Translations under genes and position numbers: made by a program | Shown here: positions 17,203 through 61,910 of the stretch, one piece after another | How positions within the stretch are numbered: position 1 is the first letter of the stretch | Layout of the letters: each line of letters starts with the position of its first letter | Source of the DNA: Phaeosaccion multiseriatum | Lineage: Eukaryota > Protista > Ochrophyta, other classes | Length of the DNA stretch: 64,000 nt | Reading direction: 5' to 3' | Assembly (NCBI GenBank): GCA_965112735.1 | Contig: OZ218963.1 | Span: forward strand, 2,666,001-2,730,000 | Notes under the pieces: generated by a model | The model's database searches: none | Told to the model about the DNA's origin: nothing | What the model saw: only the letters and a program-made list of their open reading frames with translations

Positions 17203-18423
17203 GTGAGTGAAGGGAAAGTGCCCACGCTGGCGAGGATTGTGAAGTTCCGCTGGCGCAAAGCCACGGGGCTGCCACTGCGGCGAGAGTATAACGTGCGGTG
17301 GGCGGTGGCGGACGGCGGCACTTTCCAGACCTGGGAATGGGCTGAATGGTTGCTGGAGCGGGAACACGCCAAGGCCATAGAGGCGTTCGAGAACGCCCTT
17401 CCGCACACTGCCCTTGATCCAGGAGTGAATCTCAAAAGAGGGCATAGGTCTAAACGGGAAAGCACGATCCGTCTGCGGCAACATGAGAAGTGGGGCAGCG
17501 GTCTGGCGCACGAGACGCAATTCTATCGCTCGCATCTCGGCTTCTGAGTGTTAGAAGTCGTGCTTTTGCTAGACTGGTACCTACCCTCTGAATTCAGACC
17601 GGGAGGTACCAGTCTATCAAAGCACGACTTCTAACAAGCCCATTGCTAGAAGTCGAACCCCCCCCCCCCCACCGCACATAGTGGAGAGAAGTAACTCGCA
17701 GTCTGGGAATCAGACTAATGGGTGCCAGCCGGTACCAGTTTTCGCCGAAAAACACGCTTTTTTCACAAGCTACAGCCAGGGTTCGAACTCGCAATGGCCT
17801 TGTTAGAAGTCGTGCTTTTGCTAGACTGGTACCTCCCGGTCTGAATATATCCTGAACCTGAATATATTATATTATATTCAGACCGGGAGGTACCAGTCTA
17901 GCAAAAGCACGACTTCTAACAAGGCCATTGCGAGTTCGAACCCTGGCTGTAGCTTGTGAAAAAAGCGTGTTTTTCGGCGAAAACTGGTACCGGCTGGCAC
18001 CCATTAGTCTGATTCCCAGACTGCGAGTTACTTCTCTCCACTATGTGCGGTGGGGGGGGGGGGGTTCGACTTCTAGCAATGGGCTTGTTAGAAGTCGTGC
18101 TTTTGCTAGACTGGTACCTACCCTCTGAATATTTTTATTATAATTCAGAGGGTAGGTACCAGTCTAGCAAAAGCACGACTTCTAACATGAGGGAGCTGGC
18201 GGAAGAGGCGGGGGCGTAGTGAGGGGGATGTTAGAAGTGGCCTAGTTGGGGTCCCTTGGGGACCCAATCAGTAGTGTAACGGCCGGAAAACGGGCCAACG
18301 AGACGGTACATCAGTAATAAAGAAAGGAAGCGCAGCCTGCGTGTGGGCTGGCTTCCGGGTGCTTGCTTCAGCTTCTGCTCTGCTCTAGCTTGGCTTTGAG
18401 GCTAGCTGTCGGTAGTTTCGACC
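17203..18423 (+). mobile_element. Gy-EXO 3' fragment V (chromodomain, PPT, 3' LTR 18229-~18423), carrying an HP-A dimer
   Basis: Matches 59575-60675 once insertions are removed. Confidence 0.92.
17549..18187. mobile_element. HP-A head-to-head inverted dimer (hairpins 17549-17636, 17801-17921, 18086-18187)
   Basis: TGTTAGAAG...CTTCTAACA ends. TSD TGAG confirmed against the empty site near 59917. The whole unit is a ~640-bp palindrome. Confidence 0.93.
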
Positions 18424-18901
18424 AAGACTATGTATAGGTAGGCATCTCAAAGAGCTACACGAAGAGCTATAGCGCTCCTCCCAGCCAGCGTCATTTTCCT
18501 GCAAATGCGCAAAAACCGTTTTGGGCCGGAAATCCGGCGATTTGGGCGATTTTTGATTTTTACGCAAACGGAGTGTTAAAAAATGAATGAAAGAGAATCA
18601 ATCTCAGTTCTCAATGTGGTTATTACTGTGACATTTCATTTATTTTAATTAATTGAATAAGGCTAGCTTAAATAAGGTGTTAAATAAGGCGGGCTAAATA
18701 AGCAGAACCAGGCGGGGCTTAATTAAGGCCTAAAGGTTCTGACATAAGCTCAAATTTAAAATTAAGCCCTATTTTGGCCTAATAATTCGTTTTCGTTTTT
18801 GTGATCCTGGGATTAGCAATGAATGTAAACCCCTCTTTCCGCCCCTTTCTACATCCTATCGGTCTTTATTGAGCCTCTCTATCCCCTTTCGGCATCGTGG
18901 C

Positions 18902-20113
18902 ATGGCGTTGTCCTTCACTTTGGCGTATATTATCTTACTGCTGCAAGCAGTGAAGCACTTCGCGACTCCATTACCTCATGGTGCTAGTAGGCGGAGGGTA
19001 GAGGAAGGCGAAGGAACAGCACAATTGGGGGACGAGAAGAAGCGAGAGGGGGAAGAGGGTGAAGTAGAGAGAGTCTGCGCTGACCTTGGACTGCCCGCTT
19101 GCCGCCCACCTTCCACCGGCTCTATCTTTGTTACTAGGGAAGACCCGCGCGGCCCTTTGCACTATCTTCATATTCCAAAGACAGGATCATCTTTTGAGGG
19201 CTTGTTAATTGAGTATGGGTGTAATACAGAAACGATGGCGGTGATTGATGGCGGGAAGATGAATCACGTTGAACCTATTTCGCGTCTTGGCAACGTCGTG
19301 CACAAAACCGGAAAGCCATGGTATTTCTTCTGCTCTGTGGATCTATTTTCCGACATGGGTCGACGGCCAGACGACTACATCAAACTTCCAACCGGGGTGC
19401 GGTTGGGGCACAATGGGCTGACCCCAGAACTGACAGTAGCTGCCGCAAGCAACACGATAAGCCTTGTGACAATGCTGCGTGACCCGCTGGACAGAATTGT
19501 GTCCGGGTTTTTCCACAATTTTCACGACTGCGGGCCTATGCAGCGAGAGTTCGGCATCAATGAGCACGCATCCGTCTATGATGCCGATTTTGGCATAGAG
19601 AAAGTATTCCCAACTGATATTCGCCCAGGGCACGCCAGTAATAGGACGGGTGCTTCACTGGAGCTGTTGATTCAAGAGTATGCACAGTGTGTGGACGGTC
19701 TCCCCATCATGATGATGGTGCCTGAAGTGCTACGCAGCCCTTTCCATCGGCCTTCTGAGGAAGAAATCGACATGGCTGTGCAAATGATTGAGGACAACAC
19801 TTTCGCGTACATTGGGTTCACTAATCGGTGGGAAGAGAGTATGTGTCTCTTTCGGAGGAAGTTTCCCGCCATTTACTCGGCTCGCATCTTCCACAACTCA
19901 AGGCCAGGGTTCGCCTCGAAGAAGGGAAGTAACAACGCTGCGTTGGCGGGCAGCGAGGATGAGAGGAGGGGGGATAACGACAGAAGCCCTGCGGTCATGA
20001 GAATGAAAGCACGTGAAATTCTTGCAGTGAAGGGCTTCTCAGCGGCCGAGCAGCGGGTGTATGATGCAGCACTGGCGGTCTTTGACCAAGCAGTTGCCCC
20101 ATGTACACAATAA
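18902..20113 (+). CDS. Membrane-anchored (Golgi-type) sulfotransferase
   Basis: N-terminal hydrophobic anchor; YLHIPKTGSS (5'-PSB); TMLRDPLDRIVSGF (3'-PB); FAYIGFTNRWEES. Confidence 0.85.
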   Translation: MALSFTLAYIILLLQAVKHFATPLPHGASRRRVEEGEGTAQLGDEKKREGEEGEVERVCADLGLPACRPPSTGSIFVTREDPRGPLHYLHIPKTGSSFEGLLIEYGCNTETMAVIDGGKMNHVEPISRLGNVVHKTGKPWYFFCSVDLFSDMGRRPDDYIKLPTGVRLGHNGLTPELTVAAASNTISLVTMLRDPLDRIVSGFFHNFHDCGPMQREFGINEHASVYDADFGIEKVFPTDIRPGHASNRTGASLELLIQEYAQCVDGLPIMMMVPEVLRSPFHRPSEEEIDMAVQMIEDNTFAYIGFTNRWEESMCLFRRKFPAIYSARIFHNSRPGFASKKGSNNAALAGSEDERRGDNDRSPAVMRMKAREILAVKGFSAAEQRVYDAALAVFDQAVAPCTQ

Positions 20114-20550
20114 GCCCCACATGGGATGAGGATGCATGAAGTGAATGGCGGCGAGTAAGGAGGCGGGCATCGTAACTCATTAATGCAATACTAGGTTCAG
20201 GATAATTTGACGTTATCTGAGCCTAGCTGTTGCGATATCTCCTCTACGATGACAGGGACAAGCTAGAGTAGTGTCAACTCGTGTATTAATAATACCTACT
20301 GAGAGATGCGTTCAAGGAAGTGATGGCCGTGGCCATACATGAATATCGATATCCACATCGATATTGTACGTCGATATAGTGCTCAGTCACAAATGGCGAT
20401 ACTTATCACAACACCCTCCTATGACTGAATCACTATCTCTCTTGATAGCTGACACTCTACCACAAACACAATGAGGAAACACCTGACTTGCCCTAAAACC
20501 CCCCCGAGACAAAGTCCTGAAAACCTCATACTAAAACTACTGAACTAAAA

Positions 20551-20990: not shown

Positions 20991-22256
20991 CGCCTGTCGA
21001 CCTTGGTCCTGCTTCCACGTTGACCTCTACTGTACAGATCTCGCTCGCACCGAACCCTCGTGCCACGCTGACCCCTTCCGTACTTCTCTGTGGGTAGCGC
21101 ATCCCAGTCCGTCTCATGTGCGCCTCTGTCACCCTCACTGGTTGTCTCATACGTCCAATAATGACTGGCCTGCATAGTCTCCAGGTTCTGCTCTGCCTTG
21201 CTGTAATCTGGTTGCTCTGCTCTTGCTGCTCCGCTCTGCCTTGCTCTGATATGGCTGCTCTGCTCTGCCTTGCTCTGCTCTGGCTGTTCTTCTCTTGCTG
21301 CTCTGCCCTGCCTCGCTCTGCTCTGGCTTGCTCTGCTATGCCGCACTTCCTGCCGCTGCTCGGCTGTTGGACACCTCTGTCTCTGCTGGCTCTGCCTGCT
21401 GCCGCTTCCGCTGTGCGACTGGCTCTGCCTGTCTGTTGTCTTTGCCCCTTTCGGGAGTGGGCCCGTCCCTGCACGACGCTGCATATACTCTCCCGCCCGG
21501 CAGCGGAATGTCCGATGCTACCTGTGCCTCGAGTCTCATAGACTTTCTCGTTGGTGCCACTGCCTCTCCGTGCAGGTCTGCTTTCCCTACTTCTGTCTGC
21601 TTTTCTTCCTGCGCTGCCTGCTGCTGTTTGCGCTGCTGTTCGCGCTGCTGTTCGCGCTGCTCCACCAGTTGCGCCGTGTTTTCTCTGACTCCCTCTCTCT
21701 CTGTGGGACTCACGTCAGTCCCCACAAGCCCGCGGCTTGCTCCTACCCCTACCAAGTTCTCTACTCCTGGGTATATCTGGATGGCCTCCAACTCTGCCAT
21801 CGACTCTGTTTTCCCCGGCTCTCGCTGCCGTGGCTCAGCCTGTTTCGGCTCTGGTTGCTGCTCTGCCTCTTCCGGCTCTGCACGCTCTGGTTGCTGCTCT
21901 ACCGCTCCCGGCTTTGCACGCTCTGGTTGCTGCTCTGCCGCTCCCGGCTCTGCACGCTCTGGTTGTTGCTCTGCCTCTTCCGGCTTTGCGCGCTCTGGGC
22001 CCTGCTGTTCCTCGGGCCGGTCTACTGACGAACCTTCTCCGTGGCTCCCGCTGTCACCACTTCCCCCCTCCGCACTGCTTCTACTTCGTCCCCAGGGTTG
22101 GCTCTCATCCTCCCTGTCTGCTCCCTCTTGCGACTGGTTTGACACCGATACTTCCGGTGCCATTGCCACCCCCTCCTGGCTGCTGCTGCTGCGTCCCCAG
22201 GGTGGGTCTTCTTCCTTCCGCGAGATCTGACTTCCCGCATTTTGCTCATCGTCCCC

Positions 22257-22796
22257 TGTAAGAAGGCATCCTTTTGCTAGGCTGGCAGCTATCCACTGAA
22301 TATTCACGGGATAGCTGCCAGCCTAGCAAAAGGAAGCCTTCTTACATGCCTGTCAGTTAAGGTCGATCCTTCCCCCCCCTCCGAAAACTCCTCCGAAAAC
22401 CTTGGGGGGGTAACTACCTAGGATTTCTCCCACACCGAGCCCGTGAATTTCAGTGTCATGCCCAACTTTCGCCCTCGGAAATTTTCTCACCATCCACAGA
22501 ATCGAACCCCGTCTGGGCATGTAAGAAGGCATCCTTTTGCTAGGCTGGCAGCTACCCCCGTGAATATCGAGGGCGAAAGTTGGGCATGACACTGAAATTC
22601 GAGGTAACGGGCTCGGTGTGGGAGAAATCCTAGGTAGTTACCCCCCCAAGGTTTTCGGAGGAGTTTTCGGAGGGGGGGGAAGGATCGACCTTAACTGACA
22701 GGCATGTAAGAAGGCATCCTTTTGCTAGGCTGGCAGCTATCCACTGAATATATTCAGTGGATAGCTGCCAGCCTAGCAAAAGGAAGCCTTCTTACA
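22257..22796. mobile_element. HP-B head-to-head dimer with a partially deleted central hairpin
   Basis: TGTAAGAAG...CTTCTTACA ends; CCCC on both sides; two inverted internal copies. Confidence 0.9.
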
Positions 22797-23051: not shown

Positions 23052-23203
23052 TGTTAGAAGTCGTACTTTTGCTAGACTGATACCTCCCGGTCTGAATTCT
23101 TCTAGCAACGGTCTTGTTAGAAGTCGTACTTTTGCTAGACTGATACCTCCCGGTCTGAATTCAGAGGGCAGGTATCAGTCTAGCAAAAGTACGACTTCTA
23201 ACA
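23052..23203. mobile_element. HP-A deletion derivative (half hairpin, short spacer, full hairpin)
   Basis: TSD ACCT; interrupts the Copia-1 gag-like ORF. Confidence 0.9.
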
Positions 23204-24473: not shown

Positions 24474-25105
24474 TGTAAGAAGGCTTCCTTTTGCTAGGCT
24501 GGCAGCTATCCACTGAATATTCACGGGGGTAGCTGCCAGCCTAGCAAAAGGAAGCCTTCTTACATGCCTGTCAGTTAAGGTCGATCCTTCCCCCCCCTTC
24601 GAAAAACTCCTCCGAAAACCTTGGGGGGGTAACTGCCTAGGATTTCTCCCACACCGAGCCCGTTACCTCGAATTTCAGTGTCATGCCCTACTTTCGCCCT
24701 CGGAAATTTTCTCACCATCCTCAGAATCGAACCCCGTCTGGGCATGTAAGAAAGCATCCTTTTGCTAGGCTGGCAGCTATCCACTGAATATTCACGGGGG
24801 TAGCTGCCAGCCTAGCAAAAGGAAGCCTTCTTACATGCCCAGACGGGGTTCGATTCTGAGGATGGTGAGAAAATTTCCGAGGGCGAAAGTTGGGCATGAC
24901 ACTGAAATTCGAGGTAACGGACTCGGTGTGGGAGAAATCCTAGGTAGTTACCCCCCCAAGGTTTTCGGAGGAGTTTTCGGAGGGGGGGGAAGGATCGACC
25001 TTAACGGACAGGCATGTAAGAAGGCATCCTTTTGCTAGGCTGGCAGCTACCCCCGTGAATATTCAGTGGATAGCTGCCAGCCTAGCAAAAGGATGCCTTC
25101 TTACA
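24474..25105. mobile_element. HP-B head-to-head dimer (hairpins 24474-24564, 24745-24835, 25015-25105)
   Basis: Three full 91-bp hairpins and two inverted internals. The flanks differ (no TSD), so it sits at a rearrangement junction. Confidence 0.92.
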
Positions 25106-27030
25106 GTCTCATACATCCAATAACGACTGGCCTGCATAGGCTCCAGGTTCTGCTCTGCCTTGCTCTGCTCTGCCTTGCTCTGCCCTGCCCTGATCTGGCT
25201 GCTCTGCTCTCTGTTGTGCTGTACGCTGCCTTCGTTGCACTCTCTGCAGCGCTCTTGCGGCGCTGTCTGCCGCTCTGTCCGACACACTGCCTGCTGGGGC
25301 TCTGCCGGCTGTGGCTCTACCCTCTGCTGCTGCTGTGCTGTCTGACTCTTCTCTTGTGTCTCCGTTGGCTCTGCCTGCTGCCGCTCTCGCTGTGCGACTG
25401 ACTCTGCCTGCCTCTTCTCTCTCTGAGCTGCCGGCTCTCCCTGCCGCTGCTCTGCTGTTGGACAAATCTGTGTCTCTGCTGGCTCTGCCTGCTGTCGCTC
25501 CCGCTGTGCGGCTGGCTCTGCCTGCCTCGTCTCTCTCTGAGCTGCCGGCTCTTCCTGCCGCTGCCCTGTTGTCGGACACCTCTGTGTCTCTGCTGGCTCT
25601 GCCTGCTGCCGCTCCCGCTGTGCGGCTGGCTCTGCCTGTCTGCTGTCTTTGCCCCTCTCGGGAGTGGGTCCGTCCCTGCATGACGCTGCACATACTCTCC
25701 CGCCCGGCAGCGGAGTGTCCAATGCTACCTGCTGAGCCACGGTAGACTTTCTCGTCGGTGCCACTGCCTCTACGTGCCGGTCTGCTTGCACTACTTCTGT
25801 CTGCTTTTCCGCCCGCGCTGCCTGCTGCTGTTCGCGCTGCTCTACCGGTTCTGCCTGCGGCTTCTCCGTCTGCACCGCCGGCTGCCGTACTTGCTTATCT
25901 ACCGGTTCTGCCTGCACCAGATGCTCCGTGCTCTCCCCAATTCTCTCTCTCTCCGTGGGACTCAGGTCAGTCCCCACAAGCCCACGGCTTGCTCCTACCC
26001 CTACCGAGTTTTCTACTCCTGGGTATGTCTGGACGGCCTCTGCTGCCATCGACTCTGTTTGCCCCGGCTCTCGCTGCCGTGGCTCTACGTGCTGCTCCTC
26101 AGACAGTTGCGGCTCTGTCTGCTCAGACTCTGCACGCACTGGTTGCTGCTCTGCCTCTTCCGGCTCGGCACGCTCTGGTTGCTGCTCTGCCTCCTCCGGC
26201 TCTGCACACGCTAGTTGCTGCTTTGCCTCCTCCGGCTCTGCACGCTCTAGTTGCTGCTCTGCCTCCTCCGGCTCTGCACACGCTAGTTGCTGCTCTGCCT
26301 CCTCCGGCTCGGCACGCTCTAGTTGCTGCTTTCTCAGACCTCCGCCTCGCGAAGTCCTCCCAAGCCGCTACCTTCTTTCCAAAGGCCGCTATTTCACTGC
26401 AGTAGGCCGCTATTTCACGACAGTCTTCGACGTTTCCATAGTTCGCTACTTCTATATAGCGCTCCCTCACTTTCTTCATGAGAGATTGTGCCTTCTCCAA
26501 CTCTGTCCAGGCTGCCAATTCCTCTGTCAATAGCTCCAGTTCTTTCGTGTAAGCAGCTAACTGCCGCTCCGATTCGCTTTCATTGTCAGGAACGGCTGTC
26601 TCTCCAACTGTTCCTTCTTTCAGCTCGGAAGAGAAGGTTTGCACCTTTGACTTGTAGCTCAAACAAATCAGAGAGCTGCTGCTACCGCTGCTGCCCCCCG
26701 TGCTGCCTCCCCCTCCCGCTATGGTGCCGCCACTGCTTGACGCACCTCCGGGGTCTCCTGCCCCTGACACAACAGAGCTTCCCGCTGCTGATCCTGTGTC
26801 TAACTTGGCCAATAAGTTGGTCAGGTTTGCTATCTGCTGGCTGCTGTTGCTGCTTATTTTGCTCCTGCATTTGCATAAACAGCTCCTGAGGAGACATATC
26901 GCCTCCACCTGCTCCGACGTCAGCGAACTCTTCCTCCCCATCCCCTTTCTGCTCTGTCCCGCTAGCATGCCCCCCAGGCATGGGTACCGCAAGACAGGAC
27001 CACGTCCCCTGTTGATTTACACTCACTTCG

Positions 27031-32968: not shown

Positions 32969-33163
32969 TGTTAGAAGTGGCCTAGTTGGGGTCCCTTGGG
33001 GACCCAATCAGTAGTGTAACGGCCGGAAAACGGGCCAACAGACGGTAAATCAGTAATAAAAAAAAGGAAGCGCAGCCTGCGTGTGGGCTGGCTTCCGGGT
33101 GCTTGCTTCAGCTTCTGCTCTGCTCTAGCTTGGCTTTGAGGCTAGCTGTCGGTAGTTTCGACA

Positions 33164-45903: not shown

Positions 45904-45938
<35 letters not shown>

Positions 45939-49037: not shown

Positions 49038-49211
49038 CTCTCTTCTACTGGTGGGGCTCCGCGGGCCCGTGGTGGTGGTGGTGGTGGTCTGCGCACTCCG
49101 CGCGGGGGAGTGGCCGTGAATGCGGTGGAGCAGCATCTGGAAGTGGCCGTGAATTCGGTGGAGCAGCATCTGGACCATCAGCCGTCACAGGAGGTGGGGG
49201 TGAATGCAGTG

Positions 49212-49242
<31 letters not shown>

Positions 49243-49836
49243 CGGCGCAGCAGCCGCGGCTCACGCCCACCCAGCAGCGGCCCTTGCTGTTCCACGGCTC
49301 GGTCAAGCAGCGTGGCAACGGCAATGCCCCATTTAACTGCATGACTTGTCGCCGCGCCGGCCATGGATGGATAGAATGCAACGCCATTCCCGCTACGCGT
49401 GAGGAGCTGCTCGGCATTGTGAGTCGCGTGCAGCGGCGGCAGGCGGTCAGAGCGCTGCACCAGGAGTCCGACATGTCTGAAGCCGTAGCAGCAATGGTGG
49501 CGGGCACTCTGGCGGCGCAGGACGGGTTCAAGTTCGAAGGCTGACGGTGCCCCGGGGCTGCTTGGCCAGCAGCCCTGGGGACCACGACCGCAGCGCGTGA
49601 GGATAGGTCGTCGGCGTGGGGGAACCGGGGGGGAGGGCGGGCAAGAGCAGTGTAGAAGATAATGAATGTACTTCGCACCTATCTTGTTTGTCAGACCCAC
49701 CTTTGCCCCATGCCGACGCTCAGCGTAGGAGCGGTCAGGCTAGTCGTGTAGAGCGGGAGTCACCTGCCATCAGAGTTTATCGGAGTGACATGTGGTGTGG
49801 CAACAGACTCAGACGTGCTCGGCTACGACGGCAGCA

Positions 49837-49869
<33 letters not shown>

Positions 49870-52794
49870 TGCAGAGCTGCTGCAGCATCGGTGTCCCGAG
49901 CATGCAGTAGTGGGTAGGGCGTCCACGGAGGTGACGGCGGTGCAGCAGCAGGCGCAGCAGCAGCGCCGTGCAGTAGAGGTAGTCGGGGAGGAGCTAGAGC
50001 AGCAGCCGGGTCCTGTGGTACGCTCTGTGGTCGAGCAGTCGAGGGGCACTGACGGCCCGGATGCAGTCGTTGCTGGTGAGCACACGGAGATGACGGCGGT
50101 ACAGCAGCAGGCGCAGCGTGCAGTAGAGGTAGTCGTGGAGGGCGTGCACCAGGAGGCTGCGCCAGCGGCTTCCGCAGTCGAGCAGCTGCCGCCGCCGGAG
50201 CAGCAGCAGCAGCAGCAGCCGTGTCCAGTGGTACGCTCCGTGTGCTTAGTCGAAGCACCGCAGCCCGGCTCTGCCGTCGAGCCGTCGAGCGGACCTGACG
50301 TCGCGCTGCCGCTGCCTCTGCGCCAGGAGGATGCAGTCGTTGCGGGTGAGTGTCCGGAGCAGCAGGTGCCACCGGCGGCAGCGGGGGAGGTTGAGTGCGA
50401 GGCGGCAACCGTTGCGCAACACGAGTCTGTCTGGATGGATGCAAGGGGTTTGGAGCGGGTGCGTGCGTGTGTCTTCCCGGAACAGCGCGCACTGCGTGCG
50501 GCGAAGGAGCGGCAACAGCGGCTGGGACAGCAGCAGCAGCTGCTGCAGCAGCAGCCGGCGGGACCGCAGGTGCAACTGGAGCCGCAGCAGGGTCCTGCTG
50601 TCGAGGCAGTCGTCCAGGTTGCCGAGCAGCAGCCGCAGGTGGCGGGGGGGCAGCAGGAGCAATTGGAGCAGCAGCAGGGTCATGCTGTCGAGGCTGCCGT
50701 CCAGGTTGCAAAAGCCAGCCCACCGTCAAGCGATGAGCTTCAGCCTCAGCAGCTGTGCTCCCTGGTGACGCCTCGCCAGGCCAAGGCCATGGGCCTCGTG
50801 CGGGCCTTGCCGCTCGGGGCAGCATCTCTTCCGCCATTCACTCCCACGGGTGAACATGAACAGTGGGCGTGGCAGGTTCAGCTTCAGCAGCAGGAGGAGG
50901 TTCAGCTTCAGCAGCAGGAGCAGAGCCTTCGAACCCTGCCGCTGACGTCTCCAGCGGTGCCTCCGGCGGAGGGGCGGAGCAGGACTGAGCAGAGGGTGGC
51001 AGCAAAGTGGTTGAGACGGCGTGCCCAGCAGGCGAAGGCAGCGCTGCGCAAGGGTGACGAGCAGGCGGCACAGGAGCAGCAGGATGCAGCGAGGCGCGCA
51101 GTAGCTCTTCGACGGCGGGTACGGAGGAAGCAGCGGAGGCAGCGTGCTCGTGCGACAGCAGCAGCACAGCAGCATCCGCAGGAGGCTGCTTTCACGGCTG
51201 TGTTGACGGAGGAGGCGGGGCTGCACACGCTTGCCCTTGATCCGTTTGTGCGTGCTTGTCATGCAGTAGCCTTGGAGCCTGGCGCGGGAGTCGCTCTGCT
51301 CAAGGAGCCCCCCAGTCCGGGAGCTTGTGCCTGTGCGTCGGCTGTTGACAGTGAGTGTGATATGTGTGAGGGGTGTGTGCAACGCGCTGCCTTGGCTCTC
51401 TACCGTGTGCGGATGGAGGACGCTCCGGGGGGGGTGGCCGCCTTGCAGACAGCAGTGCGGAGAGCTGAGATTGCCGAAGCGGTGGCTGCCACGGGTCGTA
51501 CGGCAGTCCCAGCAGGGCGGGGCCACACGATCGAGGTTACGGTGCGCTCGCCAGTGAAGGTCAGTGACGCTCGGCATTGCTTGGCTGCTACCGCTCCACG
51601 GGATGCCAGTGCCGCCGACGCCGTGGAGAAGAGCGCCTTTACAGCCTTGATGGACAGTGGGTGCACAGGAGCGGGCTGCATCTCGACAGCCTGCTTCAAT
51701 CAACTGGTGGCGGATGGCACGGTGGAGCGGTCAGAGCTCGCCACGCAGAAGGGGGTGCAGGTGTCTTACGCTGACAATCGTGCCAAGACCATGTCCAGAG
51801 GGCTTGTTTGGCTTCAGGTGGGACTCACGCCGACGTGCCAGCCGGTGCTACCCTTTCATGTGGTGGACCACTTGGCGCGGCCCATCTTCTTGGGGCAGGA
51901 TTTCTTCACCCAAGTAGGGGCAGTCGTCGATCATCGTGCGAAGCAGCTCTACGTACTTCCGACTCCTTCGGAGGAGGCCACGTCGGATGCTCGTCCGTCC
52001 GATGCCTTGGCTGTGCAAGTGCTGGCAGTGGTGGACGGCAACGCTGCTGTTGGGGGGGTACGTGCTGTGGAGGCTTTGAGCTTGGGACCTGGACAGACGG
52101 GGTCCCTTCGCCTCGAGCTTACGGGCATCGGTGAGGGTGTCCAGGCGGTGGTGGAGCTGGGCGCTCACGGACACTTGGCAGCGGAGGCGGACGTTCTCTG
52201 GTGGCTGGAGCACGAGCAGGTTCTAGTGGCGCACAAAGATGGTGTGTATGCTGGGGGGCAGAGTTACCGAATCATAGTGCAGAATCACCACAATCAGGTC
52301 ATTGTGGTCGTTCCTGGGCAGGTCATCGGCACTGCTTCTTGCTTGCTCGACTCGGAGGCGTGTGCTGAGGTGGCCGCGCTCATGCTCGCTGAGCCGGCTT
52401 CTTCAGATACCGTGCCGGAGACTGCAGCGGCCCCCTCCTCCTGGCTTGGTGCTCTTGGCGGGATGGTGAGGCGTGCGGTGACGCGCAGGCTGCCATGGTC
52501 CAAGGCGCGGGAGGCGGTTGAGTCTGTGGTGGAGGAGGAGGTGTCGCTGCAGCCGTCTGAAGCTGAAGCAGGAGCTGAGCAGGTCTGGTACCCACCGCAG
52601 GGGCCTGTAATTCGCTGCTCGGTAGTACCAGAGGAGGCTGAGCTGGGGGCTACGGCGCTTCCGCTGCAAGCTGTGCCGGTGCAGGCCCTGACGCACCCAC
52701 GGACTGAGGTGGGGGTGCCATCGACTCTGGTGCCTCAGCCGACAGTGAAGGCCCGGTTTCAGCATTTGCAGCGCCGAGGCAAGAAGGGGAGTCA

Positions 52795-53411
52795 TGTTAG
52801 AAGTCGTACTTTTGCTAGACTGATACCTGCCCTCTGAATTCAGACCGGGAGGTATCAGTCTAGCAAAAGTACGACTTCTAACAAGACCGTTGCTAGAGGA
52901 CGAACCCCCCCCCCCACCGCACATAGTGGAGAGAAGTAACTCGCAGTCTGAGAATCAGCATCATGGGCCAGCAAGCTGGTGTGGTGGAGCTGGGTTAGGC
53001 TCAATTACGTATTATTAGGTAGGCAGGACAGTAAGTCAATGATGTGGGGACGCGGCCTTTTGGGGCCTGGTTGGCCCCTCCGCACTCCTGAACCCGTAAA
53101 GACCAATTGGATTGCTTCCTTAAACAAGGGAGCTGTCCAGGGTCTTAGGGTGGGATAGCCATAGTCATTAATACACTTGGTGCCAGCATTGGACTCTTAT
53201 CTCTCCCCTTTTGGGCCCGGAACGGAGCGCTCAGCTTGGGGGTGCCTTCCTCCTCATAATCGAGGGAGGTACCGGCCCCACACTGGTAACAGTTTTCGCC
53301 GAAAAATACGCTTTTTCACAAGCGACAGCTAAGGTTCGAACTCACAACTAGCCTTGTTAGAAGTCATTCAGACCGGGAGGTATCAGTCTAGCAAAAGTAC
53401 GACTTCTAACA
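52795..53411 (-). mobile_element. HP-A monomer carrying a nested solo LTR
   Basis: TSD GTCA against the empty site in Y. The right hairpin is partly deleted. Confidence 0.92.
52980..53282 (+). repeat. Solo LTR, family C
   Basis: TG...CA, TSD CTGG, homologous to 30967-31270. Confidence 0.88.
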
Positions 53412-56400
53412 GTCAGTGTCGTCAGAGTCGAGTGGGTGCTGGGCGATTGCAGCGGCAACGTCGGAGAGTGGCATCAATGCTTGTGGAGTCTCCTGTGCTG
53501 TGGGACCAGGTTCATCGGCAAGCAGTGTTGGAGCGCCATGAGCAAGTGCGACGACAAGTTTTGCCGCTGCGACGGGAGCTGTGCGCTGACGGCTCCTGCG
53601 CTTGGCATCGCCGAGGGCTTCGTCTCGCTTGGGGGAGCGACTTGGGGCAACGACAGGTGCCGCGGGAGCGTCGCGTGCCCTTGGCGGCCTCCTGGGGGGG
53701 ACAGTGCGAGTGCCGGCCAGACGAGCTGACACACCACGAGTTGACTCGAAGGAGGAGACAGCAGCATGGTTGGCAACGCAGCAGGCCAAGCGGTTACAAG
53801 CGGCACAGCAGCAGGCACGGCAGCAGCGCCAGTGGGCATTGCAGCGACGGCACAAGGCCCAGCGGGAAGAGCTCTTTTAAGCAAGCGGATTCGTCGGCAG
53901 CTCAGCAGGTTCAGCGGTCCAATGCGGTGCAGCAGCAGGTGGCTCCGGCGGCGGTAGCGCGACGCCGTCAGACACAGTTGCAGGAGCTCCGACCGCCTCG
54001 TACAAGCCAGCTGCAGGTCCACCACGTGGCGGTGGCTGATGATTCCACCAGCAGGCCTGCGACAGGGGCGGCGTCGTCAGTGGCGTCGGAGGAACCGCCA
54101 CTACGGTCCGAGGCAGGATCATCGTCGGCGGCTGTGGGCACATCATTGACTGACCTACGCGGTGATGGGTGGGTACTGGATACGGATGGTGCCTTGCGAC
54201 TCGGTAGTCAGAGTGACACGTCCGGTGGGACTCTGATGGCAGGAGTGCAGTTGATCAAGGAGTGGTATCCTCACCTGTCAGAGCGAGTGTATGGACGTCT
54301 GCGCGAGTGCTTGGTTGCGGCGGAGGAAGGGGCTGTGACCGCGCTACTGCTCCTGCGCCCCCATGTACACCAAGCCGCTGGCACGGGTCTGAGCGGCGTT
54401 GGGGACGTTGCTGTGGCAGCATGGGCCCAACAGCTCTTGTCGTTGTGGTCTAGTCGCCCATTACAGCAGCAGGAGAAGGTGGAGCAGGATATGACCAATG
54501 CGCTGCTGCTCCTTATCCAATTGCGAACGGTGCTGCAGGAGAGTCACTGTCTTGGTGGTGGAGTGGAGTCGTGGGATGCAGGAGAGCTTGTTGTGGAGCA
54601 GCGGCGCCGTGCCAAGCTCACTACGGAGCGGGCTCAGTTCTGGCTCAGGGAGCTACCGTCGCCCCTGCACGCTATCACGATTGGCGACGGTGCCTGGACG
54701 GAGGTGCAACGCTGGGGACTGGTGGCGATCCTTCGTGCTCGGTCGCAAGCATTCTGCCAGAGGCCTGGTGACTACGGTCGGACGGATACTCTCTTCTTTG
54801 AGTGGGGACTGAAGGATGCGAATCAGCAGCCCATTCGGAGCTCCGCTCGACGGTATCCTCCACATTTGCGGCGGGGGATTGAGATTGAGATTGACAAGCT
54901 TCTCGCGGCTGCCATCATTCGCCCCAGCACTTCCAGCTGGGCCACTCCGCTGATGGCGGTCTTGAAGACGGACGCAGCTGGCAAAACCAAGTGTCATGAG
55001 GATGGGACGCCTGTGGTACGTATGACGTGTGACTTGTCTCAGCTGAATGATGCGTGTCGCACGGAGGCCCCTGCGATGCCGGTGATTGATGATCTGCTGG
55101 CAGAGATGCATGGCTCCAAGGTGTTCTCGGTGATGGACATCATGTCGGGCTACTTCAATGTGTCGGTGGCATCAGCAGCAGAAGAGGACATATCCACCTT
55201 TGTGTGCCACAGTGGTACTTACGCTTGGCGAGTGATGCCGCAGGGCGCGAAGAATGCGCCTGCAGTCTTTGTGCGGCTTATGAACAAGGTGCTCAAGGGG
55301 CTTCAGGAGCATGTGGCATGCTTTGTGGACGATATTGCTGTGTTTTCGGCTACGGTTGAGCAGCATCTGGAGCATTTGGATGCTGTGCTTGCGCGGTTGG
55401 TGGAGCACAAGCTCAAGTTGGAGCCGAGTAAGGCTGTATTGGGTGCACCGGAGGTGCGGTTCTGCGGGCATTTGCTGGATCAGAATGGGGTGCGCACAGA
55501 CCCGGCCAAGCATGCGGCGGTGCAAGAGCTGGTCAAGCCGTTGAGGTTGCTTGCGAAGGATGGCGGCGTCAATCGAGTTAAGCAGGTGCGGCGTTTCATT
55601 GGCATGCTCAGCTACTTTCGCCGTTTCATTCCGGAGTTTGCGCGCAAAGTGCGGCCCCTCAATGGGCTGCTGCGTAAGGGCGTCGACGTGAGCACCGCCT
55701 GGAATGCCTCGCACGATGCAGCTTGGGATGGACTCGTTGCCAACATGTTGTCTTCCCCTGCACTGGCCTTTCCGGAGTACGGGCCAGCGACGACTTCCAC
55801 TGAGTACCGATGCCTCGACGGAAGGGTTAGCAGGAGTGCTCTCTCAGAAAGATGCGACCGGGGAGGAGCGTGTGGTGACGTTCATCAGTCGGGCTACCAC
55901 GGAGACGGAGGCGCGACTGAGCAGCACGGAGCTGGAGCTGCTGGCAGTGGTGTGGTGTGTGCGCAAACTGGCCATGTACATCTGCCACTACCCCACCACA
56001 GTGGTGACGGACCATCAGCCCTTGTTGTGGTTGGCTGGGCACAAGGATACCAATTCCAAGCTGTTCAGATGGTACGAGCGGCTCTCTACGCACCACTTGC
56101 AGTTTGTGCATCGTCCCGGGAAGCAAATGGTGGTGCCTGACTGCCTCTCTCGCAACGCGCTTCCGGTGCAGGAGTGGGAGACGCATGCGGGGGTAGACTT
56201 GGCCATGGTTGCGTGCGAGTGGCCGTCGCCCTTGCACACCTGGTGTGCTTCGATGGGGGTGCAGTTGAACCTGGTGGAGATGGTAGGGGACGAGTGCAGC
56301 CTTCATTGGGAGGAGCCCACGGAGGGCGCACTGCTTCGCTTTCTCGCAGTGGCGCAACAGCTGCAGGGCGAAGCCGACACACGCCTTCCTATTCCTGTGC

Positions 56401-59400
56401 CTGCCGTGACGGCCCAGCAACAGCAGCAACGGTGCCACCACCAGCAGCAGAGCGGAGCGGAGGCCCTACAAGCCTGGCAGACTGCAGAGGTGGACTTGTC
56501 TGCGACGCAGTCACGCAGGGATACTGCTCGGCGTGCTTGGACACAGCGTCTCCAGCAATGTGGATGGCAGCCTACGCGAGCACCTCAGCTGGGTGTGAAG
56601 AAGGCGGTGATAGACGCCTGGCAGCGGGGTCAGATGTCGCCATTTGTGAGCCACATTTCCGCAGCGAGGTACACGTACGTGTCTACGCCGAGGCACGTGC
56701 AGGCTCTATCGACTCAGTTGCGCACAGCCAAAGTGGTCGCTATGGATTCGGAGTGGGCGCGTCACCGACGGCGCGCGTCGCTGCTGCAATTGGCCGTGCA
56801 GGTTGGGCCGCTGCCGGATGTGGCGCGTGACTATGGGCTCTTGCTTGATCTAGACGCGCTTCAGAAGGCGGGGGGTATGATGGTACTGGCGCAAGTGTTG
56901 CGGGACCTGTGGGCCGAACCCTCGATTGTGAAGCTGGCTCACCACTGGAGTCACGACCAACGTGCCCTGGGCCGATGGCCGGCGCTCGCGGAGCATGTCC
57001 AGCACATCGTCAACTTGGTGGACACCAGTGACCTCTTTAAGCGCGTGTGCCCCGAACATGCTCAGTTCATCGGACTCCAGGACCTTGTCAGCATGTTTTT
57101 GGAGCAACACCTTAGCAAGGAGGAGCGGGCCACCGATTGGACGAAGCGGCCGCTGTCCGCCGCTCAACAGGAGTACGCGTTTGCTGACGCTGCGGCGCTC
57201 CTCCGCCTCTGGCCTCGCATGGCGGAGTGTGTGCCGTTCGTCCATGGTGGCCCGGGGGTGGAGCTTAGCGCGATGAGCCCTGCTCACACCCCTGCGGAGC
57301 AGGAGGAGATGCAAGTCGGCAGGTTCATGCAGGCCGCGGTTGGTTATTGGGGCGATCGCGACCACGTGTCACCGCTCTACATCTTTGGTGTCCACTCCAA
57401 GACGTTGGAGGTATTCGACCTGGCCAAACTGCAATTCAAACTGCAGTGCTCGTGGGAGACAATGATGCAGGTGGTGGAGCTGTTCACGCGGACATATAAG
57501 CGCCAGCGGAAGGTGGTGGGCGCGTTGGCCAGTCATCTAGATACCATGATCGAGTTGCCATGGAAGCAAGTCCGTCAGGTGTCGCGTGACTACTTCTCGA
57601 TGTGCACACCAGCGGAGGCTCAGCAAACGGGTGCCGCGGCCGCTCATGCGTGGGCTGCATGGGAGGCTGAGCTTGAGGAGGATGCGTCTCGTCTGCTCTC
57701 GGAGGTGTGTCCAGCTGCCGTTGCTGGTGCCACCGAGGGTGAGGAGCTTGTTACGGAGGAGGGCCGCATCACCCCCCCTGGGGAGCCGCCTGCTGCGGAG
57801 TCGCCGTCGGAGCCTGGTACGGCAGATCTACTGGTCACGGAAGAAGCAGGGGATGCAGGTAATGAAGCTGAGGATGCAGTGGATTCAGTTTCCAAGGAGC
57901 CGGTGGAGCAGGAGTCCACCTTGCAGCGCGAGCTTGATGGGCATCGACGAGAGGCAGAGCGACAGTTTGGGTGGTCTCTACCAGGCACGGTGCCTGCTGC
58001 CGCGGCGCACAGACGAGCGGCTGGAGCTTTGGGTGGCAGTCTGCATGTCGAGGCCGCGTGGTGGGTGCGTGCGCAGCGGGCTGATGCGGAGCTGGAAGCA
58101 CTCCGTCGCCGTGTTCAGGCTGGGCCCACCGGCGGCGTGGTGGATGCCGGTGGGGGTGAGTTCTTTGTGGATGAGGACGGGCTCTTGATGCGTAAGTGGG
58201 CTCCTGGGGGCTTTCGGTGGCGGGTGCGGCACACTCGGCTACAAGTATGTGTGCCCAAGGAGATGCGGCCAGCCTTGCTGCATGCCGCCCACACCGATGC
58301 CATCGCAGGCGGGCACCAAGGCCCGGGACGTATGCTAGACGCGCTGCAAGAGCGCGTATGGTGGGAGAAGATGAATGCACATGCGCTGTATTGGGCCCGC
58401 TCCTGTCTGGCGTGTCAGACACGCAAGACTCCTCGCCGGCAGCCAAAGCCTGTGCCGCTGTCGTCCATTTCCAAGGTGGATGGACCTTGGGCGGTCATGG
58501 GCGCTGATGTGGCTGGCCCCTTTCCTATGGGCATGGGCGGTGAGGAGTACCTCTTGGTGTTTCAGGATTGGTTCACGAAGTGGACAGTGGTGGTGCCTTT
58601 GAGGGCACAGGACTATACGGCGGAAGGTATTGCTCGGGCCTTCGTGCGGCATGTCGTCACCACCCTGGGTGTGCCCCGAGTGCGGGTGAGTGATCAAGGC
58701 TCGCAGTTCACCAGTGCGCTCATGGGCGATGTGATGCGGGTTCTATCGGCGTCGCAAGTGTTCACGACGCCGATGCACCAACAGGCCAATGGGCAGGTGG
58801 AGCACTTCATGGCCACGATCAAGGACATGTTGGCGACGACCGTGGAGTCACAGATGCAGCAGTGGCCAGATTACGTCGCCGGGCTCACCTATGCGTACAA
58901 CTGCCGCTCGCAGGAGAGCACGGGGATGGCGCCATTCTACGCCTTGTTCGGTCGGCACCCCCCGGTGCCTCTACAGGCGATGCTTCCGGCGCTAGTGGAG
59001 GACGGGTCGTTTTCGTCTGCCTCGGCATGGGTCCACGAACTGCGGGCACGTCTGGCTGCGGCTGCGGCGGTGGTCAATGGGAGGCGCTGCGACTACCACG
59101 GGAGATTGCAGCTGAAGAACGCCTCAGCCACGCCGTTGGCCGACGCCCCTGCGACCCGGAACCAAGGTGATGTTGTATCGTCCTGGTGCCGCCGCCCAGC
59201 AAGAAGGGGAAGAGCTCGAAGGGCCCCCGTCAGCGCAACTCAAGGCTCTGCAGCACTCGTGGGATGGTCCTTATACAGTCTTGCCTTGGCCATCTCTGGG
59301 GGCCTACTGTGCTCAGCATGGGCGGGTGAGTGAAGAGCACTATCAGGTCATGCAGCGCAGCGCAGTGTATCTGTCTATGAAACGGGTGCGCGGCAATGGT

Positions 59401-60110
59401 GTGGAGCAGCTGCAACGGGCGTACCACAGAGACTTGACGAAGCCGTTCATCGATGGGGTGAGCGAGCGGCCCTTCGGTCTCCCGGAAGGGTTCGCCAGGT
59501 ATCATATCCGTTGGTGCTCTCCTCAGTGGGCTACCAGCGCAATGCAGGAGCAGCGTAGCTTAGAGCTGGACGAGGTGAGTGAGGGGAAAGTGCCCACGCT
59601 GGCGAGGATTGTGAAGTTCCGCTGGCGCAAAGCCACGGGGCTGCCACTGCGGCGAGAGTATAACGTGCGGTGGGCGGTGTCGGACGGCGGCACTTTCCAG
59701 ACCTGGGAATGGGCTGAGTGGTTACTGGAGCGGGGACACGCCAAGGCCATAGAGGCGTTCGAGAACGCCCTTCCGCACACTGCCCTTGATCCAGGAGTGA
59801 ATGTCAAAAGAGGGCATAGGTCTAAACGGGAAAGCACGATCCGTCTGCGGCAACATGAGAAGTGGGGCAGCGGGCTGGCGCACGAGACGCAATTCTATCG
59901 CTCGCATCTCGGCTTCTGAGGGAGCTGGCGGAAGAGGCGGGGGTGTAGTGAGGGGGATGTTAGAAGTGGCCTAGTTGGGGTCCCTTGGGGACCCAATCAG
60001 TAGTGTAACGGCCGGAAAACGGGCCAACAGACGGTAAATCAGTAATAAAAGAAAGGAAGCGCAGCCTGCGTGTGGGCTGGCTTCCGGGTGCTTGCTTCAG
60101 CTTCTGCTCT

Positions 60111-60629
60111 TGTAAGAAAGCATCCTTTTGCTAGGCTGGCAGCTATCCACTGAATATTCACGGGGGTAGCTGCCAGCCTAGCAAAAGGATGCTTTCTTAC
60201 ATGCCTGTCAGTTAAGGTCGATCCTCCCCCCCCCTCCGAAAACTCCTCCGAAAACCTTGGGGGGGTAACTACCTAGGATTTCTCCCACACCGAGCCCGTG
60301 AATTTCAGTGTCACCTCCCGGTCTGAATTCAGAGGGTAGGTACCAGTCTAGCAAAAGCACGACTTCTAACACAAGGCCATTGCGAGTTCGAACCCTGGCT
60401 GTAGCTTGTGAAAAAAGTGTGTTTTTCGGCGAAAACTGGTACCGGCTGGCACCCATTAGTCTGATTCCCAGACTGCGAGTTACTTCTCTCCACTATGTGC
60501 GGTGGGGGGGGGGGGGTTCGACTTCTAGCATTAGGGCTTGTGTTAGAAGTCGTGCTTTTGCTAGACTGGTACCTCCCGGTCTGAATTCAGAGGGCAGGTA
60601 TCAGTCTAGCAAAAGTACGACTTCTAACA
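60111..60629. mobile_element. HP-B/HP-A hybrid head-to-head element within the 3' LTR of X
   Basis: Left end TGTAAGAA (B), right end CTTCTAACA (A), junction ~60313, single TSD CTCT. Confidence 0.92.
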
Positions 60630-60675
60630 CTCTGCTCTAGCTTGGCTTTGAGGCTAGCTGTCGGTAGTTTCGACA

Positions 60676-61135
60676 TTTCTCATCAATACAGGGGGTGTGT
60701 GTGGGAGGAGCGGTCGCACACATCTGGGTGAGTGTTGCATAATTCTCATCCGGTTTTTTTTCGAAAGCAGCATGGAGGCTTGTGCGACAGTCGAGCTTCA
60801 GTAGGCGAATCCGCTTGTGTTGCGTGGGGACACGCAACAGTCTTGTCAAGGGGATGTTGGAAGTGGCGGATAGCTATTGGGGATGTTGGAAGGCCCCGGG
60901 ATAGGCATTGGGGATGTTGGAAGGCCTCAGATGAGATGGGCCATAAGTCAATGGCCCAGGCCCAGGCAGATACGGTGAGAACGGGTGGCGTGGCTCTCAC
61001 TATCCTATGTGCGTAGGTGGTCGTTTAGGACTAGCATGCGATAAGTAATAGAGGCAAGGCTGGCTGCTAGGCTGGCTTTCGGGTTGCTGTTACCTTGTCC
61101 GTGTGTCTAGTTCCATCCTATCTGTAGGCGACAGC
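60676..61135 (+). mobile_element. 3' half of an E element (LTR from 60915), truncated by HP-A
   Basis: Matches 35225-35679 plus the next few bases of the E LTR. Continues the half at 8129-8740. Confidence 0.9.
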
Positions 61136-61530
61136 TGTTAGAAGTCGTACTTTTGCTAGACTGGTACCTACCCTCTGCATTCAGACCGGGAGGTACCAGT
61201 CTAGGAAAATGTTAGAAGTCGTACTTTTGGCTAGACTGGTACCTACCCTCTGAATTCAGACCGGGAGGGTAGGTACCAGTCTAGCAAAAGTACGACTTCT
61301 AACAAGCCCATTGCTAGAAGACGAACCCCCCCCCCCCACCGCACATAGTGGAGAGAAGTAAATCGCAGTCTGGGTATCAGACTAATGGGTCAGCAAGCCA
61401 GCAAGCCGGTACCAGTTTTCGCCGAAAAATACGTTTTTTTCACAAGCGACAGCCAGGGTTCGAACTCGCAATTACCTTGTTAGAAGTCGTACTTTTGCTA
61501 GACTGGTACCTACCCTCTGAATTCAGACGG
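61136..61530 (-). mobile_element. HP-A cluster: partial hairpin, then monomer from 61210 truncated just after the apex of its right hairpin
   Basis: Hairpin and internal sequences of family A. Confidence 0.88.
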
Positions 61531-61910
61531 GATAAGGTAGCAGCACCCCAAAGCTGGCCTGACAGCCGGCCTTGTATCTATTAGCTTATCTATGCACTGT
61601 CCTAAACGACCACCTACAGGAGGATAGTGAGAAACGGGCCCCGTTTCTCACTGCGTTGCCTAGGCCTGGGCCACTGACATACGACTGACTTTCCACATCC
61701 CCGTCAGCCATCCCTGCACTTCTAACACTCCCCTGACAAGACTGTTTGTTAGAAGTCGTGCTTTTGCTAGACTGGTACCTCCCGGTCTGAATATTCAGAG
61801 GGTAGGTACCAGTCTAGCAAAAGCACGACTTCTAACATGTTGCGTGTCCCCACGCAACTCAAGCGTTTTCACCTACTGAAGCTCGACTGTAACCAAAAAC
61901 TGGGAAAAAA
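61531..61910 (-). mobile_element. Diverged E-like element fragment
   Basis: Homologous to the reverse complement of the E LTR and 3' internal region (e.g. CCTAAACGACCACC, CTACTGAAGCTCGACTGT). Confidence 0.7.
61747..61837. mobile_element. Solo HP-A hairpin (91 bp)
   Basis: 34-bp perfect arms, asymmetric bulge, CTGAATATTCAG apex. TSD TGTT against the E empty site GACTGTTGCG. Confidence 0.93.

Follow-up and report, generated by a model that had tools for sequence, protein, structure and literature searches.

One question raised by a 64-kb stretch of the genome of the ochrophyte Phaeosaccion multiseriatum (contig OZ218963.1, positions 2,666,001 to 2,730,000; here called the window) is how elements that carry neither genes nor ordinary long terminal repeats (LTRs) come to move. 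At nine loci within this single window, to which the whole of the analysis refers, lie small units bounded by palindromic hairpins (HP), which an earlier, sequence-only reading had assigned to two families, HP-A and HP-B. The evidence supports HP-A and HP-B as two sister families of non-coding, non-autonomous mobile elements of about 350 bp, and their ends and target sites point to the integrase of a co-resident Gypsy-type retrotransposon as the activity that they probably exploit. How such elements would be copied is a further question, and the answer offered below, by way of RNA and hairpin fold-back, is a more tentative one.

The canonical HP-A unit (48683-49037) measures 91 + 173 + 91 bp and has two identical hairpins, which bears out the earlier description of a hairpin, an internal region of about 170 bp and the same hairpin again as a direct repeat. 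Each hairpin has TGT...ACA ends, an apex on GAAT(AT)TC and an asymmetric internal loop beside the apex, all much as the sequence-only reading had it (TG...CA ends, an asymmetric bulge, the same apex), save that the arms, put there at about 34 bp, are of 35 bp. Folded as single-stranded DNA, the hairpins reach -42 to -60 kcal/mol (z = -15 to -23), and the internal regions, folded as RNA and set against shuffled sequences, are no more stable than expected in A (z = -0.4) and modestly more stable in B (z = -3.1). The homology that had been proposed between A and B extends beyond the hairpin over the entire unit, in one relative orientation, and the architecture must therefore be older than the A/B split and not a recent accident. 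Conserved between the families are a block directly after the 5' hairpin, which contains GTTCGA, and a second block before the 3' hairpin, composed of a run of 9-13 G, then GG(A/T)TCGAC and then about 15 nt; the internal region also holds degenerate inverted copies of the terminus.

An nhmmer profile built from eight hairpins recovers 16 full and 6 partial copies in the window, all within the nine loci, and finds no further diverged copies elsewhere in the 64 kb. The 35-nt arm of HP-A has 17 matches in the window where 0 are expected, and the motif TGTWAGAAG has 44 against an expected 0.65, counts so far above expectation that chance is excluded. All nine insertion loci listed at the outset are present at their coordinates, including the solo hairpin claimed (61747-61837), and a tabulation of monomer, solo and dimer forms and of their target sites, which had been proposed genome-wide and was carried out within the window, identifies inverted dimers at 17549, 22257 and 24474, an A/B chimera at 60111 and rearranged elements at 23052 and 61136.

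The mobility of these elements is supported by sequence comparison of occupied with empty sites. Several copies lie inside repeated Gypsy sequence, so that paralogous empty sites exist, and the target-site duplications (TSDs) TGAG (17549), GTCA (52795) and CTCT (60111) match such sites in other Gypsy copies; the empty site of the CTCT insertion is found in both LTRs of an intact Gypsy element, G1, and that of the GTCA insertion in G1 as well. The TGTT duplication of the solo hairpin at 61747 is likewise verified, its empty site being the reverse complement of 60823-60850. The duplications ACCT (23052) and CCCC (22257) are read only from the flanks, the latter being weak and within a C-run. All six of the 4-bp TSDs claimed earlier (TGAG, CCCC, ACCT, GTCA, CTCT and TGTT) are thus present, four of them with the confirmation of an empty site. 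At 24474 no TSD is seen (flanks CTTC and GTCT). The A monomer at 48683 occupies a site that is found empty in the Gypsy copies G1 and G3, with CCCACTTACG directly followed by CTCTCTTC at the point of insertion; the insertion is exact, with no duplication and no target bases lost, and looks as though a free linear copy, its TGT...ACA ends exact, had been captured by end-joining. Precise presence and absence against empty sites, together with the 4-bp duplications, are what support the mobility of the hairpin elements.

The next question is whose enzyme inserts them. The start of HP-B, TGTTAGAAGTCG, and the start of the G1 LTR, TGTTAGAAGTGG, are identical over their first 10 nt and agree at 11 of the first 12 positions; the other end of the G1 LTR (TGTCGAAACT read inward) agrees with HP-B at 6 of 12, and the HP-A start agrees at 9 of 12 with that of a related LTR family, TGTTGGAAGGCC, represented by the small LTR element R. 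The chance of seven more identical positions beyond the TGT shared by the class is about 6e-5 per comparison, or about 1e-3 allowing for the ends compared. Every one of the 44 TGTWAGAAG sites lies in a hairpin, in a G-family LTR end or in one diverged LTR start (61719), and the Gypsy copies are the only coding elements of the window with the shared terminal 10-mer at their ends. The length of the duplication agrees also, as had been stated: it is 4 bp in the Gypsy lineage, both in G1 (GTAG, with intact empty sites at 34725-34745 and 61124-61135) and in R (ACTG). Moreover, hairpin elements present in a second copy of the G1 family, G2, have no counterpart at the corresponding positions of copies that share 98-99% identity with it, and hairpin elements and Gypsy were therefore active in the same period. 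On such features of sequence we consider it probable that the hairpin elements are parasites of a Gypsy-type integrase. The sequence-only reading had proposed just this, with one attachment (att) end serving both termini, and that part stands, given the identity of 10 nt between HP-B and the U3 end, the 4-bp TSDs and the A/B chimera; its further suggestion, that the hairpin replaces tRNA priming, fares less well, the presumed helper lineage being without tRNA priming.

The main alternative, which had also been named from the start and which we judge rather unlikely, is that these are MITEs (miniature transposable elements with inverted repeats), or composite MITEs, of a Ginger-type DNA transposon with an integrase-like DDE transposase that lies outside the window. 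The 35-bp arms would then be terminal inverted repeats (TIRs), the solo hairpin a minimal MITE, the hairpin-internal-hairpin unit an old composite moving as a whole, and the dimers errors in the replication or repair of palindromes. Ginger1 and Ginger2 resemble Gypsy LTRs in their TGTNR termini, have TIRs of 40-270 bp and 4-bp TSDs, and encode a transposase derived from an integrase (PMC2836005), and the ends of the hairpin elements (TGTTA and TGTAA), their 35-bp inverted arms and their 4-bp duplications do fit Ginger1 and the metazoan Ginger2 (PMC2836005). To this may be added that the solo hairpin carries a TSD of its own, that the degenerate inverted copies of the terminus in the internal region resemble sub-terminal transposase sites, that an excised linear DNA is compatible with the capture without duplication at 48683, and that the elements are without a primer-binding site (PBS), an abutting polypurine tract (PPT) or a self-priming signature. 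The fit fails at the target: Ginger1 prefers CCGG/CCGT and Ginger2 RTATAY (PMC2836005), and none of the six duplications is of either kind, while those of GingerRoot are of 6 bp. Of the earlier proposal, then, the ends and the duplication length hold, and the alternative as a whole is weakened by the target sites. An autonomous element with the same TIRs, which had been named as the thing to look for, was sought and not found in the 64-kb window, where no transposase-bearing element has these arms.

The forms in which the hairpins occur bear on this choice as well as on the mode of copying. The three inverted dimers (17549, 22257 and 24474) are built on one plan, that is, hairpin, internal region, shared central hairpin, inverted internal region and hairpin, and in three of three the GTTCGA side of the internal region faces the central hairpin. 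The arms of the large palindrome are 231 nt long and 100% complementary at 17549, and 192 nt long and 95% complementary at 24474; the dimers at 22257 and 24474 may descend from one transposing dimer. In the chimera (60111-60629) an A left end and a partial A internal region are joined to B sequence, namely a hairpin fragment, an internal region and the right end, and because a single verified TSD surrounds it, it has moved as one unit with one A end and one B end, a structure which suggests that the two families are handled by one enzyme.

Within monomers the paired hairpins are identical or nearly so, and the orientation of the apex tracks that of the internal region in six of six monomer-type units (A at 48683 and 60111; B at 23052, 52795, 60316 and 61210), the A form of the apex, CCCCCGTGAATATTCAGTGGA, being homologous to the B form, CCCGGTCTGAATTCAGAGGG, and pointing the same way when the internal regions are aligned. 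It follows that the hairpins are genuine direct repeats, LTR-like in this respect, without the free flip of parvoviral inverted terminal repeats (ITRs). A Ginger-type origin leaves this conserved direct orientation of asymmetric-apex hairpins in both families unexplained, and would require, for homology of A and B over the whole unit, that the composite be ancient. Symmetric apexes, some with AT-rich expansions, occur in dimers only (17801, 18086 and 22705). The breakpoints of deletion or rearrangement fall in the apical part of a hairpin in five of five cases, those at 22567, 23099, 53366 and 61530 at most 7 nt from the apex centre and that at 60316 about 15 nt from it.

A further constraint comes from the arms themselves, the covariation of which was computed over 14 hairpins and 35 arm pairs with 500 shuffles. 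Paired cells amount to 97.9%, and the impression that substitutions appear in both arms together is borne out by both-side changes in 10 of the 35 pairs, a covariation score which none of the 500 shuffles equalled and which collapsed in slid controls. Fixed differences between A and B account for seven of these ten pairs. Young variants within a family are concordant too: arm position 26 carries a T in every one of the four arms at 48683 and nowhere else; a subtype B2 (A14 with A29) is found in every informative arm of the separate elements 23052 and 52795; and a subtype B3 (A14 only) in all five arms at 61136-61530. Discordant arms are confined to the dimers and the chimera. The concordance implies that new mutations must spread to both arms and both hairpins, and cut-and-paste transposition of the Ginger type offers no means by which a new variant would reach all four arms.

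What mechanism could unite these features? In the scheme that we propose, the outermost 10-12 bp or so of each hairpin arm would imitate the U3-type att end of the co-resident young Gypsy LTRs, and the palindromic repeat would present this same att sequence at both termini, so that an integrase of the Gypsy lineage could join a linear double-stranded copy to its target with a 4-bp duplication. The linear copy would be made from element RNA by the reverse transcriptase of the helper, the hairpins serving as miniature LTRs, and this role would explain their direct orientation, their near-identity within an element and the existence of a solo derivative. During strand synthesis the 35-bp hairpins may fold back at 3' ends and prime the copying of the strand newly made; fold-back priming would explain the dimers that share one hairpin, the symmetric or expanded apexes peculiar to dimers, the breakpoints at the tips and the concerted arms. 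Half hairpins and apex breakpoints would arise where tips are opened, and arms would be homogenised by fold-back and the repair of mismatched stem positions. The apex pattern of the 24474 dimer (F2, F2, F1) is that predicted for fold-back at one terminal hairpin. Taken as a whole, this reading of the elements as Gypsy-integrase parasites copied via RNA with hairpin fold-back is one that we regard, on the strength of sequence patterns, as evenly poised; the RNA route of copying, for which the LTR-like identity and the chimera give indirect hints, is, judged for itself, put forward with some hesitation. Its most specific version, which may be termed rolling-hairpin retrotransposition and in which the palindrome would be both the att at each terminus and a snap-back primer at the 3' end of RNA or cDNA in place of a tRNA or Tf1-type primer, is speculative and we hold it to be doubtful.

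Several observations weigh against this proposal. The evidence comes from nine loci in one 64-kb window, and no further copies were obtained from metagenome and viral collections: metagenome scans with the hairpin core and with the G1 LTR start, and one scan of a viral collection, returned 0 matches. The att identity is positional evidence, with a chance level of about 1e-3 to 1e-4, and not homology of a whole end, and local alignment to the LTR, 5' leader and PPT region of G1 was not significant beyond the terminal 10-mer. Two of the nine loci are without a TSD, and the clean zero-duplication insertion at 48683 is not the product of an integrase. Standard LTR replication copies the left and right arms from different LTRs and would not by itself explain the same new variant in both arms. 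The apex halves seen in the 17549 B dimer (a/b', b/b', a/a') are not those that a canonical unit would give by simple fold-back, and none of the simple fold-back or inversion schemes that were tried reproduces the pattern.

Priming raises a further difficulty. In G1, in which no tRNA-type PBS is present, the 9 nt after the 5' LTR (ACCCGGAAG, 47926-47934) are complementary to an LTR-internal sequence, CTTCCGGGT (47998-48006), and R has an equivalent pair, ACCCCAAAG (34771-34779) and CTTTGGGGT (about 34681-34689), with two compensated differences from that of G1. Such complementarity between an LTR 9-mer and the PBS is the layout described for Tf1-like self-priming elements (cited in PMC6934838), and from the sequence the Gypsy lineage (G1 and R) seems to self-prime like Tf1. 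A motif AATAAAAG stands about 30 nt upstream of the LTR 9-mer. The hairpin elements have no TGG-type tRNA PBS by sequence reading and no tRNA-like sequence by ARAGORN or Rfam, and they are without the 9-nt LTR-to-PBS complementarity at offset 0 that G1 and R possess, so that they cannot simply copy the priming of the helper. Their conserved run of 9-13 G, on the same strand in A and B, stands 22-27 nt upstream of the 3' hairpin, does not abut it and differs in this from a conventional PPT. For want of a tRNA PBS, a self-priming signature and an abutting tract, the hairpin elements are not standard TRIMs (miniature retrotransposons with terminal repeats) of this lineage.

A second rival reading would restrict the integrase to insertion and derive the linear DNA from the processing of cruciforms or hairpins, giving hairpin-capped 'dog-bone' molecules that replicate as inverted dimers, as in rolling-hairpin or origin-dependent inverted-repeat amplification; we consider this improbable. 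Hairpin-ended replicons have duplex replicative forms, monomer and dimer, whose layouts the monomers and dimers here do match, the symmetric AT-rich expanded apexes (17801, 18086 and 22705) resemble tips that have been opened and refilled, the breakpoints cluster at apexes, and yeast offers a documented case of inverted repeats amplified through closed dog-bone intermediates (PMC4689423). Yet the coupling of apex to internal orientation in six of six monomer units is unlike the flip/flop of terminal resolution, hairpin caps leave no free TGT/ACA ends, so that an extra step of resolution must be assumed, and no HUH Rep, protelomerase or similar gene was found among the window open reading frames (ORFs) scanned. 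That the dimers and possibly some palindromes are artefacts of assembly or sequencing, or local rearrangements, with only an ordinary small repeat being mobile, is hardly credible. It is true that at 17549 the 231-nt arms show 100% identity, as a fold-back read could give, and that the region is a dense nest of repeats; yet 91-bp hairpins recur, exactly bounded and with TSDs and empty sites, in nine contexts, the arms of the two A dimers have diverged (95%) and their flanks are independent, and a verified 4-bp TSD brackets the 17549 dimer itself.

The Gypsy-parasite interpretation may also be set against the known classes of small elements. The hairpin elements work most like TRIMs, yet they have no PBS. 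With TRIM, SMART, Cassandra, Helenus and Ajax elements they share terminal direct repeats, a short non-coding internal region, TG...CA ends and a TSD of 4 bp (4-5 bp in the known elements), and, as a further likeness to TRIMs, a probable dependence on an autonomous LTR element, solo derivatives and multi-repeat arrays; solo-repeat derivatives and multi-repeat arrays are recorded for TRIM-type elements (PMC6934838, PMC10886601). They differ in that the terminal repeat is a near-perfect palindrome with a 35-bp stem, so that the same att-type sequence is found at both termini, in that they have no tRNA PBS, self-priming PBS or abutting PPT, and in that their arrays are inverted (repeat, unit, repeat, inverted unit, repeat) and not direct arrays of terminal direct repeats (TDRs) of the form TDRx_I(x-1). 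The element R (34519-35679), which belongs to the same lineage and is an ordinary small LTR element, lies a few kb away and shows the contrast within the window, and the likeness to Tf1 belongs to G1 and R, with their 9-nt pair, and not to the hairpin elements, which are without that signature. From Ginger elements, with their one pair of TIRs, they differ by having two direct copies of a palindrome.

In Foldback elements the TIRs are long, are composed of sub-repeats and make up most of the element, and the TSDs are longer. Strong self-complementarity is common to these, to palindromic MITEs and to the hairpin elements, in which the solo hairpin answers formally to the description of a MITE, 91 bp long and with 35-bp TIRs, and whole dimers can fold back; the arms of the hairpin elements are nevertheless a unique 35-bp sequence, their hairpins are mutual direct repeats, and their end sequence is shared with an LTR, which sets them apart from Foldback. 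Terminal palindromes with asymmetric tips, inverted dimers joined through a single palindrome and fold-back priming of inverted duplications are familiar from parvoviral ITRs and from the self-priming of retroviral minus-strand strong-stop DNA. Here, by contrast, TSDs and LTR-type ends point to an integrase and not to a Rep nickase, the elements have no coding capacity and no Rep gene nearby, and instead of flip/flop there is coupling in six of six units. No hammerhead of the Retrozyme kind was found in the terminal repeats by Rfam, either at gathering thresholds or at E<=5. Full-text literature searches by sequence string and by keyword yielded no account of an element whose direct terminal repeats are palindromic, which is not proof of novelty.

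Coordinates of the hairpin elements and of the Gypsy-lineage elements in the window (HP, hairpin; signs in brackets give the orientation of internal regions).
Feature	Positions	Strand	Structure	Target site and context
HP-B inverted dimer	17549-18187		HP 17549-17636; internal(-) 17637-17800; central HP 17801-17921; internal(+) 17922-18085; HP 18086-18187	TSD TGAG at 17545-17548 and 18188-18191; empty site in two Gypsy copies
HP-A inverted dimer with central deletion	22257-22796		HP 22257-22346; internal(-) 22347-22519; half hairpin 22520-22567, stopping 2 nt beyond the apex centre; 5'-truncated internal(+) 22568-22704; HP 22705-22796	CCCC/CCCC flanks in a C-run
HP-B monomer with internal deletion	23052-23203	+	half hairpin 23052-23099, to the apex; last 15 nt of internal 23100-23114; full HP 23115-23203	TSD ACCT
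HP-A inverted dimer	24474-25105		HP 24474-24564; internal(-) 24565-24744; central HP 24745-24835; internal(+) 24836-25014; HP 25015-25105; apex forms F2, F2, F1	no TSD (CTTC / GTCT)
Canonical HP-A monomer	48683-49037	+	HP 48683-48773; internal 48774-48946; HP 48947-49037	inside Gypsy copy G2; no target duplication
HP-B monomer	52795-53411	-	HP 52795-52883; internal with nested repeat of about 300 bp, 52980-53282; 3' HP remnant 53355-53411 (deletion to apex)	TSD GTCA
A/B chimera	60111-60629		HP-A 60111-60201; part of an A internal(-), as far as about 60315; HP-B fragment 60316-60371; B internal(+); HP-B 60541-60629	single TSD CTCT; in the 3' LTR of G2
Rearranged HP-B	61136-61530	-	HP minus last 15 nt 61136-61209; full HP 61210-61304; internal(-); half hairpin 61478-61530, its break 7 nt beyond the apex centre, at the start of an inverted R LTR copy	right flank lost; intact empty site 34739
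Solo HP-B hairpin	61747-61837	+		TSD TGTT
Gypsy G1, presumed helper	35680-48130	-	12.4 kb, intact; 196-bp LTRs 35680-35875 and 47935-48130, 100% identical; LTR start TGTTAGAAGTGG, LTR end TTTCGACA	TSD GTAG
G1 pol ORF	35914-42378	-	reverse transcriptase, RNase H, 3'-5' exonuclease, integrase	
Gypsy copy G2, G1 family	5' part 32969-34518; rest 48173-60672	+	LTR start TGTTAGAAGTGG at 32969	hosts A monomer, B monomer and chimera
Small non-autonomous LTR element R	34519-35679	+	252-bp LTRs, start TGTTGGAAGGCC; self-priming PBS ACCCCAAAG; PPT; 3' LTR completed at 48135-48172	TSD ACTG

The Gypsy lineage has peculiarities of its own. A DNA_pol_A_exo1 domain (PF01612) stands between RNase H and integrase at residues 1081-1263 of the pol encoded at 35914-42378 (-), and again in that at 55704-59333 (+); exonuclease accessory domains are mentioned for LTR elements (PMC6338049). 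Pol is preceded by about 1900 residues of ORFs without Pfam matches (42086-45550 and 45603-47813), and its best database relatives, from assorted eukaryotes, reach 38% identity. An origin of the hairpin elements as internal-deletion derivatives of G1 was considered and rejected: when the G1 LTR, its 5' leader and its PPT region were aligned locally to the A and B units in both orientations, the results did not rise above shuffled controls.

The element R has an internal region of about 690 bp, in which a PPT-plus-LTR-start motif, GGGGATGTTGGAAG, is triplicated at 35400-35480, and G1 is nested in its 3' LTR; a second copy of R lies at 60676-61135 and an inverted, diverged copy at about 61530-61900. 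Of a single target inside an R element (compare 35220-35240), one half forms the 5' flank (8131-8145) of a Gypsy copy whose end is at 8130 and the other half the 3' flank of G2 (60673-60690), TTTC being common to both; these flanks have therefore been exchanged, probably through inversion by recombination between inverted Gypsy copies. The repeat of about 300 bp nested in the B monomer at 52795 (52980-53282) recurs at 30967-31270 with 85% identity on the opposite strand, and this second copy lies upstream of a different Gypsy (pol 27485-30706, LTR start TGTTGCCCC).

A ribozyme, tRNA or SINE origin of the hairpin elements was also rejected, no match being obtained with Rfam at gathering thresholds over the whole window, with Rfam at E<=5 on two loci, or with ARAGORN. 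The only resemblances were of hairpins (for example 18086-18187 and 48947-49037) to generic microRNA precursors in Rfam, all well below gathering thresholds and due to the shape of the hairpin. A reading of the conserved GGTTCGA as a Pol III B box was dropped; T-runs lie downstream of it within the internal region, and there is no fitting A box.

Elsewhere in the window, about 7 kb of consecutive long ORFs (9098-16184, +; 696, 290, 277, 439 and 339 aa) are without Pfam or PDB similarity and may be either GC-rich noise or an unknown element; they were considered as an autonomous partner of the hairpin elements and, with no such similarity found, set aside. An ORF of 414 aa at 18869-20113 (+) has a weak match to Sulfotransfer_2 (E = 3e-4), its sole database relative being a protist transcriptome protein with 24% identity, and may be the one gene of host-like character that the window contains. 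Arrays of 36-bp period occur in two paralogous segments about 4.2 kb apart (21761-22049 and 26049-26373), and there is a 229-bp tandem duplication at 8207-8664.

Whatever the route by which they are copied, elements of this kind would be misclassified by LTR finders and by MITE finders alike, and their hairpins, if transcribed, would be obvious Dicer substrates, the perfect 35-bp stems being likely sources of small RNAs. The family constitutes a natural experiment on what a Gypsy integrase needs of a DNA end, on how a eukaryotic genome tolerates palindromes, breaks them and keeps them homogeneous, and on whether the self-priming of a hairpin can replace dedicated primers. If rolling-hairpin retrotransposition were true, only the reverse transcriptase and integrase of the helper would be needed, inverted dimers and half hairpins would arise as by-products, as would the homogenisation of arms, and a previously undescribed style of replication for a retroelement parasite would be at hand. 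If the link to the integrase holds, these would be about the smallest possible parasites of LTR retrotransposons, for which a single att mimic of 10-12 bp, doubled by palindromy, is enough for integration, and which would fall between the definitions of Class I and Class II elements.

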